The notes beneath the pieces are model-generated. The model did not search any database and was not told the DNA's origin. It saw nothing but the letters and a program-made list of their open reading frames with translations. A stretch of 64,000 nt of DNA, taken from assembly GCA_030704615.1 (NCBI GenBank), contig CM060732.1:60760001-60824000 (forward strand), given 5' to 3'. The translations under genes and the position numbers were made by a program. The stretch comes from Takakia lepidozioides. Taxonomy: Eukaryota; Plantae; Bryophyta. This document shows positions 1-7,385 of this stretch, in pieces; positions within the stretch are counted from its first letter, which is position 1, and the number at the start of each line of letters is the position of its first letter.

Positions 1-110
1 TTGCCTGTAAACTGATCTGGGTTGTCAATTGGAGGTGGATGCTTTTTGAGGAGAGAAGAGATGGCAAGATATGCCTCTGATGATAGGTAAGCTTCTGGAC
101 TTGTGAGCAG

Positions 111-646
111 CTACAATTTTCTGGACAGCGTGGAGTCAATTGTGGGAGGCGTCTGCTCCGTCTCTATCTCTCTCCTCCTCCCGTCCATTTTCTATTACAA
201 GTCAGTGTCTTTTCCCATCTTTCAAGATTCCAGTATGAATATTTCTCTCTCTCTATGAGCTTTCCGCGGACGTTATAAAGCACCATTTCATTTCATTTCA
301 TTTCTCTCACTCTTTTCTTACCTTTACATTTAACTAAAGAAGCCAGGAACAATGAAGATGAAGGGGCCAGAGTTGGAGTCAGCTATTCTGAGGCATTGCT
401 CCAAAGTAGTGCTGCAATGCTCACAATTTATGGTGTCCCACATTGCCAGTTCACCTCATTCTGGTGGGATGTGTATATCACACAAGACTGAGTTGAGTGG
501 AGTGGGGTTTTGAAAGGTTGCATGTGCAGGAGATGAGTGTTCAGAGGAAGGCAACAGTAGTGGGCATGTGCGGTCTGGGAATTTTGTGTGTGTTGGGTAT
601 TGCCACCATCAACATTCTGAAGCTGTCCCAGATCATCAAAGTCTAG
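111..646 (+). CDS. 3' end (last two exons, 111-200 and 517-646) of an amino-acid transporter, Aa_trans/AVT1-like
   Basis: The AG/GT-bounded exons splice in phase to YNFLDSVESIVGGVCSVSISLLLPSIFYYKLHVQEMSVQRKATVVGMCGLGILCVLGIATINILKLSQIIKV*. The hydrophobic helices and the S..LP..FY pattern resemble AAAP/AVT C-termini. The gene begins upstream of the window. Confidence 0.7.
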
Positions 647-1094
647 TTGCTTATTTCTGAATATATCAACTGACTATTTATCTGCATACATGCAAAAGAG
701 AGTGTAAAGGGCTATGAAGATGAGACCGTTTTGCAAGTAAGTGTGCTGTTTAGTTATTAACATGTAGTGTCTTTTGGTGGAAATGACCATATTGTTTTGT
801 AATGGTATGTTCAGTAAAACTTGTAGGTTTTATTTGCAGAATTACTGGAGGATAAGCTTGTCGTTGTACATCAGGGGAGGATTTGAACAGTTGGTGTAAC
901 ATTTCCCATTATCTTCTGTAGTGGGAATTTCATAAATAACTGGTCATAATAAGGTTTACTCTGCAGTTTGCGTACCTCGTCAAAGACTATATTGGATTGT
1001 AAAGACATACTTATTTAGTATATCAACCATTGCTCCTGCTTGGGTACCATGTCTTGGTTGGAGACTACTCTTCACAAGCTTCAGTAAGCTCTAG

Positions 1095-2698
1095 TTAGCT
1101 CTTGCACTCCCAAATAACAAAGCCATCACAATTGCATAGTCTCTTGTGCACACCAGCCCTGTCACTGCGGCCAATGACTGCAGCGGCTATTTTCTCAACG
1201 TTCGCACTAAGTCCAGGGGCGTATAAAACTACCGAACGCCCAATCATATCTGTCACCATCAGCTTACTGTTTGTTGCAGAGCTTTCTGCATGGCCATTTC
1301 TATCGGCTACCAGCATTCCCAAATCTCCCGCAGGTGTTTCCTACAAGCCATCCATTTTAACACAATTTCACTGAAATCATGGTTGACTTAAAGAAGCTAC
1401 TACTCTCTCTAGAAATTTGAACGCTTGAACTGGTTTGAACATACACCTCAAACAAGCTTTGACCTGTAAACTTCAATTCAATTCACCAACTTAGGTGCAG
1501 CCCTAACTCCTCCAGATCTCACACACCTCACCCACATACTGTTGGGGGACTGAAAGGTCCAAAGTAAGTCACTCACAAATATTGGCAGATTGGAGGGGTG
1601 ATAAGCTGCACCCGTGCTGGCAGGGCCCTGTGTGAGGTCACCGTATTCGTGCACACTCCAGCCATGGGCACCAGGGGCCAAACCATCGATGACAGCCTCT
1701 ATCACGCATGCCTGCAGCCCAGTGACCTCTTGTGCAAATCTCACCACCCCGTGCACAACTGGGCCTTTAAATTCTGCCACCGCTATCGTCATAGGTTCGC
1801 CTGTCTCAGGCCAGAATATGAATTAGTGAACAACCAAGTGTGGTCGGAGCTGCCTGCAAAAACTGAGGCATCCTCCACTAGGAAGAAATATTGCATCTTT
1901 ACCTACTCTTGAGACCTTCCTGAAGTGACGCAGAATAACTCTTTTGTTGAAGTACAGAGCACTAATCTTAGATCACAGCACACTGCTATTCGAGTGATGA
2001 GACGTACATCAAGGACGACTTCGTTATCTCAGTTACCTTCGCGACATACATGTACACCTTCAAAACGAGACCCAGGAAGAAGTTGGTTTGAGGTGGCAGG
2101 AATTCCTGTAAATCTAATGCAGCTGTCTTGACAGTGGACTGCATCCGGGAAAGATTGAAGTCTGACTCACTTTTGTGTCCTGATTGTAGCTTGGGAAGTG
2201 GTGAATCATCGAAGCTCTTTGGCTTGCCTGACCCCATTACTTTGAACAGATCCTGACTGGAATACTCTTCAAAGATTTGTGAGTCACCTGTTGGTCCCAC
2301 CGTTGAATTCAGTATACATTGAGTCTTCATAGTATGTAATCCTTTTAAGTTGTAACATATATGCTACTTTTGGGCAACCGGCCATGTAGTGAGTTCACAC
2401 GAAAGCAACCGTACGTACAAATAAGTTGACGTACATGACCTCGGATCGTTTTTCCCAGCAACCTCAAATTATCTCTGATTCCGATTCCTGAGAACATCCA
2501 GGCTACTGGAAATTAATGGAGTACCTACCGCAGACATACTATGAAGAGACTATGAACAATAAGGCCCAGTGAGCTCGTATACGTACCCGCCGGTTGGACA
2601 TTGCAGGCGACCATCGTAGCTGCCCCTCCCGCACGTTTGCAGCTCCTCTTTCCCTGCTTCTGTTCCACACAGACAACACCAAGTCCAATACCCGCCAT
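1095..2698 (-). CDS. CCS: Copper chaperone for SOD (CCS)-like protein, 193 aa, apparently lacking the ATX1-like domain I
   Basis: Exons 2698-2587, 1800-1577 and 1340-1095 total 582 nt in phase, with the ATG in an AAAATGGCG context. Domain II motifs: AVAEFKGP..GVVRFAQ, GAHGWSVHEYGDLT.GPASTG, GDLG, IGRSVVLY. Domain III has the CxC motif in KRLCNCDG. Exon 1 is the least certain part. Confidence 0.85.
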
Positions 2699-3378
2699 TT
2701 TGAGGATTGCCTTTGTAATAGTCTCACTGTAAGTCACATGAATTGCATACCACCCGTGTTCAAAACCGAGGGTTCCTACCCTTCCAGATGTCCCGGTTGC
2801 ACTTTTTGTATCTTAATCTCTCTCTTCAGGGCCAATGTACATATATATAGCTTCTTTCTTCTCTTTTTGATTGAACAGCATGACATGCCTGAAGCAAAAC
2901 TGAGGGTGATCGAATCCACACCTGCTGAAGTTTGGTTACTGAGACAAACACAGTGGTTGCAATTCCTGGCTCTTTCACACCCGGCAGCAGGCTGAGGCCA
3001 CAGCTCCTAAATCCAAAGGCTGCAGGCGAAGTGATCCAAACAACCATTGGCCTCTCCAGCTAGTTCGGTCCACTAGCTCTCATTACATCTACATAGATGG
3101 GCACGCTTCCTGCCCAGCAGACCCTCCCAAGACCGGACGAGAGCCCACAAGTCCCTATGATCCACCGAAGCAAATGCCCCTCAAATGCCCCTCAAATGCC
3201 CATCTATATAGAACCCAGAATGCGAGGAATTGGGGACCTGCTCGAGGTAGATCTCGGTCAAACCATGGGGCAAGAGTGCTGGTAGAGAATTCAACACAAA
3301 GTAATTTGCATGGTGGCACGATGTTGTCACTTTTACGACACTACTATGCACTGTGTGCATTGGGTTTAAATCTCACAT

Positions 3379-3881
3379 GTACAGTGCACTGTACTACTAT
3401 GGCTCTTTTGTACTTGTATTGTGTACTACACTTGTGTACTGCACAGAGCTGTATGTTTGTTCAAAGCTTCGCTGAGTTAGTCCCAAGGGAATTCCTCCTT
3501 GTGCGGAAAACCCTTTAAGTCACACACACTTTGAGATCAACATAAGTAGTACATCTAGATCTACATCTCCGCAATACAGATGTTGGATATATACTCTTCT
3601 AGAAACTCTTGTTTTGAAGAGCCATGAATCTCTGAGCCACGGCTTATCATTGATAAAGGATGTCGTCATTGTGTTGTGCGGTCGTAAGAAGGGTAGACCT
3701 GCAGCTGGATGGATGCGGTTATGTGAGCCCTAGATGAAATGGTTGCTCAAGTCACATGTTTTTCTTACATGTGGGTCGCCCACTTGGGAGAAGAGCTCTA
3801 TTGTGTCTCTAAGTATTGTGTACTACACTAAATGGCCGCAGTACACAGGGATGCCTGTACTGCAGTAGTACACTGTAGTAC
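3379..3881. promoter_or_regulatory. Two clusters of GTAC(T) copper-response elements (SBP/SPL7/CRR1-type) in the shared divergent promoter
   Basis: 11 GTAC in about 500 bp: 3379, 3391, 3410, 3423, 3436, 3549, 3820, 3841, 3857, 3868, 3878. Ten are GTACT/AGTAC. TATA-like boxes lie near 3205 (minus side) and 4015 (plus side). Confidence 0.8.
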
Positions 3882-4083
3882 ACAGCTCCAGGCTGCTGGC
3901 ATCTTCTTCAAACAATTATTCTGAAACCCACTCATCTGGAGTTATTAAAGAGGTGCTCTTTGAAGCCACGCCCCTGACGTGTTTGTTCTGGGTTTGCATG
4001 ATCGCTTGCTATCTTATAGAATCGGCATTTGCCCGCCCCTTCACTCTTGACTTGCGTTTGCATGGTTCTCAGATCTGAGGATC

Positions 4084-6125
4084 ATGGCAGCTGCAGTTCC
4101 ACTACCGTTGGCAACCGTGGAGCTCAGGCCCCTCCCCTTCGATTTTGTAAGCGGGTTGTGGAAATCTGTAATTTGTGTTGATTTGTGTTTGTCTGATTGC
4201 ACAGGCGGCGCTTATCTGGATTCTGTACTGTCTGGCTGGGTTCTCGCTGGGTTCCGTGTGAATTATCAGATGAGGTGTTTAATCAGGTCGATTCAGAACT
4301 AATAGCGCTCGGCCCTGTAGCTGCATGTCTACGAGCGAGTAAGTCGGTCCTAGTGCTGTTCGAGTTGCGTCACGATGTCTGTTCAAGCTCCAGCTACCCG
4401 ACCACTTTGATAAGGCGTGGCCTAATACGTACGCATGGCAGGATGCGTTGGAACCACACATGAGCAGGCAGACTCTAGAAGTACACTGGGGTAAACACCA
4501 CCGTGCCTATGTGGACAATCTCAAGAAGCAAATCGATGGCACTGATCTGGCCCGCAAAAGCCTTGAGGAGATTGTGAAACTTTCTTACAACAACGGCCAG
4601 CCTACCTCCGCTTTCAACAATGCTGGCCAGGTTTTCTTCTTAAGCTTCATTCTACTCTCGTCTCTTCTGAGTCCCATATATATACTTTTTGAGCTTCAAA
4701 CCGGTTTTCAGAGCTATGTCTCCCTCTCCATATAATCTGTCAGGCGACTGTCTGCCGTTCTCTTGCAGGTATGCCCAAGGCGGTAATTGCTGGAAGTCAT
4801 GCTTAGAGTTCCAAATTTCATGAATTGCTATGTATATCTGGACACGTTCAGTTTGAACACTGCCAACTCCATCACACATATGATGCACGATCCAAAAATG
4901 TTACCAGGACTTCTGAGGGTGCCAAAGGGGCCCGGGCGCAGGCATGGAACCACGAGTTTTTCTGGCAATCAATTAAGCCGGGTGGCGGCAAGAAGCCGAG
5001 CGGTGAGGTGCTCCAGTTGGTAGAACGGGACTTTGGGTCATTTCAGGGGTTTGTGCAGCAGTTCAAACAGGCTGGCGCTTCCCAGTTTGGTTCTGGCTGG
5101 GCATGGCTCGTCTGTAAGCAAAACATCCGAGCAAAACTAGTTTTTCATGTCATTCTGTGTTAAAGCAACAAAGTAGATTCCCAGATTGCACAGGTTTGAG
5201 CTTGTAAAATATATATGCCTTTAATTCGATCAGGCCTAGCGTCTTGTGACTGAAACATTCATGCCTTGCGGGGGATGAGGAGCAGGGAAAGATGGAAAGC
5301 TAGAAATTCAGAGCACTGCCAACGCCATCAGTCCACTTGTCTTCGGCTACAAAGTAAGGGCCTTCACCTAAGTAGTTGTAGCCTATGCGCTATCTCTTTC
5401 ACTGTTTCTATATGATTATGTCGAGAATTCTACGTGCGATCTTACATGTAAGCTTACATTGTGGCTCAGAATATCACTTGATAGGCCAACCGCACTTACT
5501 GACTCATAATTTACTGAGAACTGTCTGGGTGATTGATGGAACGGAATGGGGGGTGACAGCCTTTGCTGGTTGCGGATGTCTGGGAGGTGCGTATCTTACC
5601 TCAGCCTATTTTGAACTCTTCCTTACAATTTCCTGCTTCTGATATTACTGTACTGAGCTGGTGTTTTGTCCTAGGTAGATCCCGCATGATTTTTCGCAAA
5701 TTGAAGTATCTTAGCACTGGAATCTCAAGGATTCTAGAAACCAGCTTGTAACATATCATCTCTAAGAGAGGACGTCCTGCTAGAGAAAGAAGCTTGCTGG
5801 AGAAAACTCAAATTGAAGTTCTTGAGCATGAAATCTTATGTTTGCTGGGGTATGGGGATGGGCTTCGGTTGTGCAGCACGCTTATTACCTCGACTTTCAG
5901 GTGAGTAGCAGCATGCCTTGCCTTCGTAATCTGATACTTCAAGTACATCCCCGCACAGTGAACCAGGTCTTTGGCATTTTCGAGATCACAAATTGGAACT
6001 TACAATAGTGTTGTGTGATTGTGGGTATAATACAGAACCGGCGGCCTGATTATTTGACTACATTTGTGGATGAGTTGATCTCGTGGGAAGCTGTCGCTGC
6101 GCGTCTGGAGCACGCGCGCACATGA
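4084..6125 (+). CDS. FSD: Iron superoxide dismutase, 7 exons, no obvious transit peptide
   Basis: Exons 4084-4146, 4442-4630, 4942-5113, 5286-5353, 5560-5586, 5877-5900, 6036-6125. Motifs [27 protein letters not shown] (Fe-type), [26 protein letters not shown]. Confidence 0.95.
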
Positions 6126-6961
6126 TTTTACCCACAACCCGTACTGGACCCTGGAAAATTCCTAACCGCAGCAGATCAGCTGCAGTATTGAGGCCCCAAC
6201 AGTACCTGCAATTTGGCTCAGTCGTTAAATGGGATAAATGATTCCTTGCTTGTTTCCCATTGTACCTGAGTGTGCCAAATGCCAATTCAGAGACTTTTTA
6301 AATTGAGAAGCATCTCCGTCTCTCTCTCGCGTGTAGGTATGCTTTGTACATCCACGTTGTCTGGTAATACTTACGTTCTTCTCTCAAACGTTGCAAATCT
6401 GCAGACAGTTGCCATGCTATCAACTGCAGAATAAGTCGTTAGGAGATTAGATCAGATCTTAAATTGTACTGCATGCAGTGTACACATTCTCTAGTGCGCC
6501 TAAGGACATATGAATTGTTGATAGCGACGTGGCTGGCAGTAGTGAATCTGTTCTTCCCACGGCCTGGCCGCATATATGCTCCCAGATGGTCTGTCTATGT
6601 ATGGAGTGTCTCAATTCTGATGAGTGTTCTTCATAGCGTGATCAAACACAGACTAATACTTGATTGTAGTCTTATGGTGTCAATGGAAGAATAGATGTTG
6701 TCATGTAAAGATTCTTATACAAATCTAGACTGACGGTATGGGCTCTGACACGAGTTCGAATGAAGCTGCGAAGTAGATTCAGTTAGCTTAAGAAAAAAAA
6801 CAAAAAAACAAAAGGATAATAATCAAATTTGCGGGCGCTGGGGCAGAGTATATTGCAAGATTATGGCTTTAGAGATATACATATAAACGTATGCAAAGAA
6901 AACATGGTTTGTGGGTGGGAGCGTAGGTTATAGCTACTAGCGTAGTTTGTGCCGTTGGCAC

Positions 6962-7385
6962 AAGTGTTAAGTGTCATCTAAGCCCAAGTGCAATCTCCTA
7001 TGTATCCAAGTGCCTCTCTTCCCAAGTACAACCTCTAGGGTAGCTGCCGTTGGCCCATGTGTGAAGAATTGAAATCTAAGACCAAGTGCAATATCATATG
7101 TATTCCAATGCGTCTCCTATGTCTCCTATGTCGAGGCCCATCTAAGACCAATTTCAATCTTCTATGTATCCAAGTGCATCTCCCGCGTAGAGGCCCAAGT
7201 GTCCATTGTCATATAAGCCCAAGTGCAATCTCCTATGTATCCAAGTGTGTCTCCCAAGTAGACGCTCAAGTGCGACCTCCAATGTCTAATGTCATTTAAG
7301 TCCAAGTGCAATCCCCTGTGCATCCAGAGACCCTGCAGTTTGGGAGATCTCCACGTCAATCTCAACAATCTCTATGTCATTGCCC
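6962..7385 (+). repeat. Degenerate minisatellite, unit about 22 bp (CCAAGTGCAATCTCCTATGTAT)
   Basis: Near-exact or decayed copies at about 6984, 7082, 7149, 7219 and 7302, with further partial CCAAGTG units between them. Confidence 0.7.

Follow-up and report, generated by a model that had tools for sequence, protein, structure and literature searches.

A gene of the CCS type without a recognizable domain I, divergent from an Fe-SOD gene, in Takakia lepidozioides

A 64-kb stretch of the Takakia lepidozioides genome (contig CM060732.1, positions 60,760,001 to 60,824,000; hereafter the window) carries on its minus strand, at 1095-3171, an intron-bearing plant gene for which RNA contigs and profile matches indicate a product of the CCS type (the copper chaperone of superoxide dismutase, SOD). 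In plants CCS is commonly regarded as one protein of three domains, and what domain I does in vivo is still debated. The window gene has no ATX1/HMA domain with an MxCxxC motif. We consider it, with moderate confidence, to be a functional member of the CCS family that combines a non-HMA N-terminus of ~105 residues, a domain II without a copper site and a CxC-bearing domain III, and that would act as a SOD maturation factor under copper-responsive transcription.

Gene structure and domain content

The assignment to CCS, first proposed in a first-pass annotation made from the sequence alone, is borne out by both domain II exons. The open reading frame piece 1792-1478, or exon 1800-1577 (E4), matches Pfam Sod_Cu (1.9e-10), and the best solved relatives of the E4 region are human CCS domain II (~2e-11). 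The final exon (E5) matches Sod_Cu at 8e-4 and aligns with residues 163-247 of human CCS, a match that includes the domain III CxC. This motif, which the same annotation had called intact, is CNC at 1136-1128; it aligns with the CxC of human CCS and is kept in the related contig L001 (described below) and in all liverwort relatives.

In the domain II alignments Ser, Ala and Pro replace the residues that we take to be His46, His63 and Cys57 of SOD1, and Tyr stands at the position of His120 (Asp200 in human CCS). Three of the four copper ligands and both disulfide cysteines (Cys57-Cys146) are replaced and the zinc loop is shortened, so that the hallmarks of a Cu/Zn-SOD enzyme are absent. The replaced ligands and cysteines identify this as a CCS-type domain II and not an enzyme. 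The two features of the CCS family in its broad sense, a domain II without a complete copper site and a C-terminal CxC, are both present. All members of the HMA-less group described below retain, together with the CxC, the motifs GDxT, IGRS and AVI(A/G)RS, which we read as probable counterparts of the dimer-interface segments of SOD1.

The locus comprises five coding exons, with a product of ~259-261 residues (Table 1). The RNA used here consists of assembled contigs from one public run (X1), and transcript ends and levels can therefore not be read from it. Contig 1 (2643 nt, depth 38) is placed on 517-1339, 1576-1799, 2170-2285 and 2585-2652. After correction for shifted cuts the introns lie at 1341-1576, 1801-2170 and 2288-2586, all three with GT..AG on the minus strand. 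The first-pass annotation had proposed a 37-codon first exon, opening with ATG 2698 and spliced straight onto domain II. Its phase 1 GT donor after 2587 is indeed used in contig 1, but the RNA leads from 2587 into a 117-nt exon (2287-2171) and only from there to 1800. The proposed start codon is absent from the RNA, because no X1 contig covers 2653-2921. Contig 1 ends at 2652, beside two in-frame AG acceptors (2654/2653 and 2660/2659) that place the exon start at 2653 or 2659.

A second contig (262 nt, depth 32) spans 2922-3171, and its end coincides exactly with a CAG-GT donor of the minus strand (2922/2921); on its downstream side it has 12 extra letters that do not match the adjacent DNA, and the plus strand has no AG at this boundary. 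Within this contig an in-frame stop precedes ATG 3047 by five codons, and the frame that starts there runs for 42 codons to 2922, where it closes in phase 0, in frame with an exon start at either 2653 or 2659. The transcript most likely starts in this upstream exon, 3171-2922, with ATG 3047 as the start codon. We infer the join between E1 and E2 from donor, acceptor and phase, whereas the other three junctions are present in RNA. The E1 leader (3048-3171, minus strand) contains three tiny upstream open reading frames, ATG-TAG at 3094, ATG-TAA at 3088 and a 7-codon frame from 3083, which may exert translational control. Directly upstream of the end of the E1 contig the decamer GGGCATTTGA occurs three times in tandem (~3171-3200, minus strand), and these repeats may be a promoter-proximal mark or the cause of the assembly break.

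The HMA domain with MxCxxC that characterizes a canonical three-domain CCS is not detected by motif, Pfam, hhalign or hidden Markov model. A motif scan of the minus strand over 1-4300 found no MxCxxC in an HMA-like context, and Pfam HMA matched none of E1, E2, E3, the first-pass exon 1 or the long open reading frame through E3. In six frames we ran a CCS-specific HMA hidden Markov model (A2) built from 23 CCS HMA domains. This model recovered both HMA exons of the canonical Marchantia CCS gene as a positive control (1e-19 and 1e-13), and gave nothing better than E ~2 in window 1-4300, in the related contigs L001 and L002, or in the HMA-less loci of Marchantia and Riccia. With hhalign, a 23-sequence HMA profile reached a probability of 0.4% against E3 plus the upstream open reading frame and found nothing in E2. 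The sole resemblance of E3 to HMA is GSGKPKS to GQGVPSE. A candidate HMA relic recognizable by sequence, 36 residues at 2330-2226 obtained by tblastn with animal CCS (E 0.05 for an 8-kb target), was rejected on the same hhalign value. RNA of the neighbouring iron superoxide dismutase (Fe-SOD) gene starts at 3947 or earlier on the opposite strand, which leaves no space for another exon upstream.

It is very unlikely that the gene model is an artefact and that a normal HMA exon sits in an unsampled isoform or region. Such an error could arise because the E1-E2 junction and the 5' end rest on two unjoined contigs of one small run. However, the validated model finds no HMA signal in the six frames of 1-4300, the in-frame stop upstream of ATG 3047 and the start of the Fe-SOD RNA bound the gene on that side, and L001, L002 and the annotated liverwort proteins likewise have no HMA. 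The first-pass statement that no MxCxxC/HMA exon lies toward the Fe-SOD gene, and its call for a six-frame HMA search, are thereby answered in its favour. Its suggestion that three cysteines of exon 1 might form an alternative metal site is not supported: one of them is intronic by RNA, only two are likely to be coding since coverage stops at 2652, and the relatives do not share the positions of their N-terminal Cys.

The annotation had described domain I as missing. No HMA is recognizable, but the domain was not removed as an exon, and both of its exons persist in degenerate form. This emerged when annotated proteins of relatives were mapped onto their own loci. The exons of canonical MpCCS of Marchantia polymorpha (P0200 on L006) measure 369, 30, 73 (phase 0 to 1, carrying MxCxxC), 135 (1 to 1, the rest of HMA), 233 (1 to 0) and 255 nt (258 with the stop). 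Those of the window gene measure at least 126 coding nt, then 67 or 73 (0 to 1), 117 (1 to 1), 224 (1 to 0) and 243 nt plus stop (246), and those of the HMA-less gene of Riccia fluitans (P0032 on L005) 162, 76 (0 to 1), 239 (1 to 0) and 258 nt. The five window exons therefore resemble the last five of MpCCS, with the same phases and similar sizes, and in both genes the split codon before domain II falls six residues ahead of AVAEF. The symmetric 1-1 exon has been dropped from the Riccia gene and is retained in the window as E3. E2 and E3 are degenerate positional homologues of the 73-nt and 135-nt HMA exons; the homology that we claim is one of position and not of sequence. This correspondence indicates that domain I decayed in place after a duplication at the DNA level. 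The 61 residues of E2 and E3 are rich in Gly, Ala, Ser, Pro and Lys, a composition suggesting that they do not form the alternating hydrophobic strands of the HMA fold.

Relatives, descent and constraint

In searches, alignments and trees the window exons were used singly, as separate partial rows. A phmmer search of E4 against 1.84 billion representatives returned two fragments as best matches: P0001, which is 79% identical and lies on L002, a contig of a JGI metagenome, and P0003, which is 73% identical and lies on L001, an ENA contig of 356 kb. In comparisons with L001 and L002 themselves, E4 is 74-81% identical. L001 contains equivalents of both E4 and E5, including LCNCDG. Its upstream exons cannot be aligned to the window, and the N-terminal exons are not conserved in sequence; upstream blocks shared by L001 and L002 suggest a Ser-rich N-terminus in those two. 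The "IVAC" N-terminus of P0001 was discarded as evidence, being the intron read-through of a prokaryote-style gene call.

Full-length proteins without HMA are present in four liverworts, M. polymorpha, M. paleacea, Riccia sorocarpa and R. fluitans, with Sod_Cu as their only Pfam domain. The M. polymorpha protein (P0151, 270 amino acids; MARPO_0152s0017, BBN14163.1) bears the database name MpSOD4. A profile search (A1) also identified canonical HMA plus Sod_Cu CCS in M. polymorpha, R. fluitans and R. sorocarpa (P0200, P0276 and P0287), and in Sphagnum, Selaginella, ferns and Mesotaenium. Three liverworts thus hold an HMA-less protein together with a canonical CCS, which agrees with the paralogue that the first-pass annotation had envisaged. 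Comparison of the window N-terminus with the liverwort HMA-less proteins gave an hhalign P of 0.11, a hint only. In the literature on MpSOD4/MpCCS, Marchantia CCS and Marchantia copper deficiency we found no description of an HMA-less paralogue. A paper on the soybean CCS family was uninformative. The relatives are already deposited as unnamed or loosely named proteins, and the window protein is a variant of a known family.

Two further HMA-less sequences were seen. R. fluitans has a second, damaged-looking copy in the L005 region (P0169, R1flu_001073; 167 amino acids, with CSCGG replacing CSCDG), five gene models away from R1flu_001068. P0005 (L003, Logan SRR33208241) is an HMA-less CCS-like open reading frame that groups with E5 of the window; in its zinc-loop region it has an in-frame stretch of ~35 residues that looks like a read-through intron.

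In a tree of 39 rows (LG+C20), in which the L001 exons also formed separate partial rows, 23 canonical land-plant CCS form a clade (100/95), and every HMA-less bryophyte row falls outside it, both window exon rows included. The E5 rows of the window and of L001 group with P0005 and the four liverwort HMA-less proteins (93/95). For E4, the three rows (window, L001 and L002) make up a separate clade (97/92) that is not placed with the HMA-less proteins of liverworts. We regard the window gene as the probable orthologue of MpSOD4, an orthology that is unproven because E4 gives no clear grouping with those liverwort proteins. A duplication confined to liverworts was rejected (approximately unbiased (AU) test, p 0.002), and the depth of the duplication is uncertain because the branches are long. 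The gene would have arisen from a three-domain CCS by gene duplication; the canonical partner is present in liverworts, and here 64 kb of genome were read.

A less favoured account is that domain I was lost separately in the lineage of the window and in the Marchantiopsida, so that the gene is not an orthologue of MpSOD4 and instead parallels a Brassica copy (see below). The separate E4 clade fits such an origin, and forcing all HMA-less rows together costs 6.25 log-likelihood units (AU p 0.058). The window also retains the 117-nt exon whose counterpart Riccia has lost, liverworts show no synteny with Fe-SOD, and the Brassica case demonstrates that loss of this kind recurs. A common origin is nevertheless indicated by the grouping of E5 with the liverwort HMA-less proteins, by the position of both groups outside the canonical clade, and by what they have in common: few residues beyond the CxC at the C-terminus, promoters with GTACT clusters and the weak N-terminal resemblance.

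The gene is under purifying selection, with ratios of nonsynonymous to synonymous substitution (dN/dS) of 0.04-0.21. For E4 they are 0.08-0.10 between the window and L001 and 0.04-0.10 between the window and L002, in both cases with saturated dS, and 0.19-0.21 between L001 and L002, where dS is 0.63-0.68; for E5 the ratio between the window and L001 is 0.11, again with saturated dS. The first-pass annotation had proposed dN/dS and transcription as the checks on a pseudogene, and with spliced RNA present and ratios in this range the gene is not one. A decaying, functionless duplicate is accordingly the least credible reading of all. It could draw on the N-terminal exons, which are not conserved in sequence with L001, but low dN/dS and correct splicing exclude a neutrally decaying copy: the frame is intact, the RNA contigs are comparable in depth to the Fe-SOD contig next door, the CxC is kept together with the interface-type motifs, and the ratio of 0.19-0.21 comes from the pair with unsaturated dS.

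GTAC clusters and proposed function

The window gene and the Fe-SOD gene diverge across a 775-bp spacer, from E1 to the Fe-SOD transcript, that contains 11 GTAC sites where 1.95 are expected (Poisson P 6.6e-6). With a cluster defined as at least 5 GTAC in 200 bp, all clusters of the 64-kb window fall within this spacer or the E2-E3 intron. GTACT-type clusters lie upstream at all five HMA-less loci for which there is upstream sequence (Table 1), and 36 of the 41 sites are of the GTACT/AGTAC type. No GTAC cluster was found at the canonical MpCCS locus (L006), its 3-kb upstream flank included. SBP/SPL factors recognize GTAC as their core site (PMC12993094); the copper regulators SPL7 and CRR1 belong to these factors. 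The moss protein PpSBP2 binds GTACT motifs in the Fe-SOD promoter and represses Fe-SOD at high copper (review PMC3617394). Because the GTACT clusters are conserved and GTAC is the SBP/SPL core, copper-responsive transcription is plausible, and there is good reason to expect it for the HMA-less paralogue, in either direction.

The head-to-head arrangement with Fe-SOD is conserved in L001. As an ancient feature it was rejected, since no such neighbour lies within 10 kb in Marchantia or Riccia. On its other side the window gene faces a convergent plus-strand gene (111-887), whose last intron is 201-516 (GT..AG) and whose last exon is 517-887 or extends beyond. One RNA contig bridges this gene and the 3' untranslated region of the CCS-like gene, so that the two genes overlap or meet at their 3' ends. 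At 242-307, in the intron of the convergent gene, unrelated RNA contigs with many loose ends are stacked very deeply (summed depth ~5000) and mark a dispersed repeat.

Table 1 Features of the window and GTAC clusters at related loci
Locus	Feature	Position	Strand	Description
Window	E1	2922..3171	-	5' leader with three tiny upstream open reading frames, ATG 3047, 42 codons, phase 0, CAG-GT donor; RNA contig of 262 nt
Window	E2	2587..2653	-	67 nt (73 nt with AG 2661-2660 as acceptor), phase 0 to 1; without CxxC; RNA contig 1
Window	E3	2171..2287	-	117 nt, 39 codons, phase 1 to 1; joints 2287/2587 and 1800/2171 in RNA
Window	E4	1577..1800	-	N-terminal half of domain II; Sod_Cu, human CCS, RNA joints
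Window	E5	1095..1340	-	C-terminal half of domain II, domain III CNC 1136-1128, stop 1097-1095; human CCS match, RNA
Window	3' untranslated region	517..1094	-	At least this far; contig 1 continues into the last exon of the convergent plus-strand gene
Window	Fe-SOD gene	3947-5875	+	RNA exons 3947-4146, 4442-4627, 4939-5113; joints 5113>5286, 5353>5560, 5584>5875
Window	GTAC(T) clusters, spacer	3379-3436 and 3820-3878		Between the window gene and the divergent Fe-SOD gene
Window	GTAC cluster, E2-E3 intron	2411..2583		5 sites
L001	GTAC cluster	6942-7054		Between Fe-SOD and the CCS-like gene
L002	GTAC cluster	365-462		Within a block conserved with L001
L004 (Marchantia)	GTAC cluster	520-700 bp upstream of MpSOD4 ATG		One other cluster in 21 kb
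L005 (Riccia)	GTAC cluster	Upstream of the HMA-less gene		No other cluster in 21.5 kb

Loss of domain I need not mean loss of chaperone activity, as a yeast and a fly example show. Yeast CCS with both domain I cysteines mutated fully activates yeast SOD1, and Drosophila CCS, which naturally has no MxCxxC, activates the SOD1 of both human and fly; the CxC is indispensable (PMC2602909). A review of 2026 emphasizes that domain II acts as a molecular chaperone, and it presents insect CCS as a stabilizer (PMC13017621). By analogy, the window protein may be a SOD maturation factor that works independently of domain I and receives its copper in trans, and we give that activity itself roughly even chances. 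Domain II would dock on a SOD monomer, and the CxC of domain III would insert copper, oxidize the SOD disulfide, or both. The copper would come from a separate ATX1-like chaperone, glutathione or a transporter and not from a capture site of the protein's own. Transcription would respond to copper through SBP/SPL-type factors acting on the GTACT clusters, shared here with the divergent Fe-SOD gene. The partner, copper source, localization, direction of regulation and activity in this scheme are all inferred.

Several observations weigh against a functional maturation factor of this descent. The E1-E2 join falls between two unjoined RNA contigs, and placing all HMA-less rows together carries the likelihood cost given above. 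If GTACT acts as it does in the Fe-SOD promoter of moss, expression of the gene would be largely confined to low copper. In yeast, domain I matters most at low copper. Expression under such conditions would fit a non-loading role better.

Such a role could be that of a copper-economy regulator, which would dock on apo-Cu/Zn-SOD through domain II without loading copper. Under copper shortage it would serve as a decoy, holdase or anti-chaperone, induced along with Fe-SOD by the GTACT promoter that the two genes share. The first-pass annotation had suggested, as a conjecture, a decoy, an apo-SOD stabilizer or a Cu-retrieval factor. We consider a regulator of this kind a less likely alternative. 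It is consistent with GTACT clusters that are shared with Fe-SOD, conserved at the MpSOD4 and Riccia genes and absent at canonical MpCCS, as well as with the repression of Fe-SOD at high copper that GTACT mediates in moss (PMC3617394). Insect CCS acting as a stabilizer rather than a copper donor, and a human CCS mutant that can pull copper out of SOD1 (PMC13017621), offer precedents, and because a canonical CCS coexists in liverworts the HMA-less copy would be free to specialize there. However, every member strictly keeps the domain III CxC, which inserts copper and oxidizes the disulfide, and a protein that was purely a decoy could do without it.

A maturation factor supplied with copper in trans remains the reading that we prefer. 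A more speculative possibility, to which we attach little probability, is an ancient second bryophyte CCS lineage, older than the split between liverworts and the lineage of the window. Its members, without copper capture and on one SBP/GTACT switch with Fe-SOD, would restrain or buffer the metallation of Cu/Zn-SOD at scarce copper as a holdase or anti-chaperone and so spare copper for plastocyanin. If true, bryophytes would have at the protein level an equivalent of the copper-economy circuit known in seed plants from miR398. The conserved GTACT clusters and the promoter shared with Fe-SOD suggest, at the level of sequence, a previously unrecognized part of the response of bryophytes to copper deficiency. 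A paralogue that is conserved, under constraint and expressed, has no domain I copper site and stands beside a canonical copy constitutes a natural separation-of-function experiment, which is testable in Marchantia with MpSOD4 against MpCCS. If the protein is merely a redundant chaperone, the finding amounts to a modest correction of annotation.

Comparison with known CCS proteins

The MpSOD4 group of M. polymorpha, M. paleacea, R. fluitans and R. sorocarpa resembles the window protein in its N-terminus of ~90-110 residues without HMA, its Sod_Cu domain II, its CxC and its short C-terminus, and in length (245-270 amino acids against ~260). Both have upstream GTACT clusters, fall together in the E5 clade (93/95) and lie outside the canonical CCS clade. 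They differ in that identity across domains II and III is 50-62%, the Riccia gene has no 117/135-nt exon, and the liverwort genes have no Fe-SOD neighbour.

Canonical plant CCS, such as Marchantia P0200 and the Arabidopsis type, is 48-60% identical to the window protein in domains II and III. It has the same positions and phases across the last four introns, and it shares the Tyr at the SOD1 His120 position, the shortened zinc loop and the CxCDG..IW motif. In contrast, the window gene has no MxCxxC or HMA signature, encodes a shorter C-terminus and stands outside the canonical clade, and canonical MpCCS has no GTAC cluster in its 3-kb upstream flank.

Insect CCS (Drosophila, Anopheles and Bombyx) likewise has a domain II and a domain III CxC without the domain I copper site, and it functions in SOD1 maturation or stability (PMC2602909, PMC13017621). 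It is, however, the sole CCS of insects and is still described with an N-terminal domain I, whereas the domain I sequence of the window gene is unrecognizable and liverworts hold a canonical CCS as well.

A CCS paralogue without HMA also occurs in Brassica (the P0046 cluster, 18 members of 217-219 amino acids across Brassica species), an independent angiosperm case of domain loss. As in the window protein, a leader, here of ~70 residues, precedes domains II and III. The Brassica copy, however, nests with Brassica CCS (99/95) as a duplicate of recent date, and its origin is an independent and much younger event.

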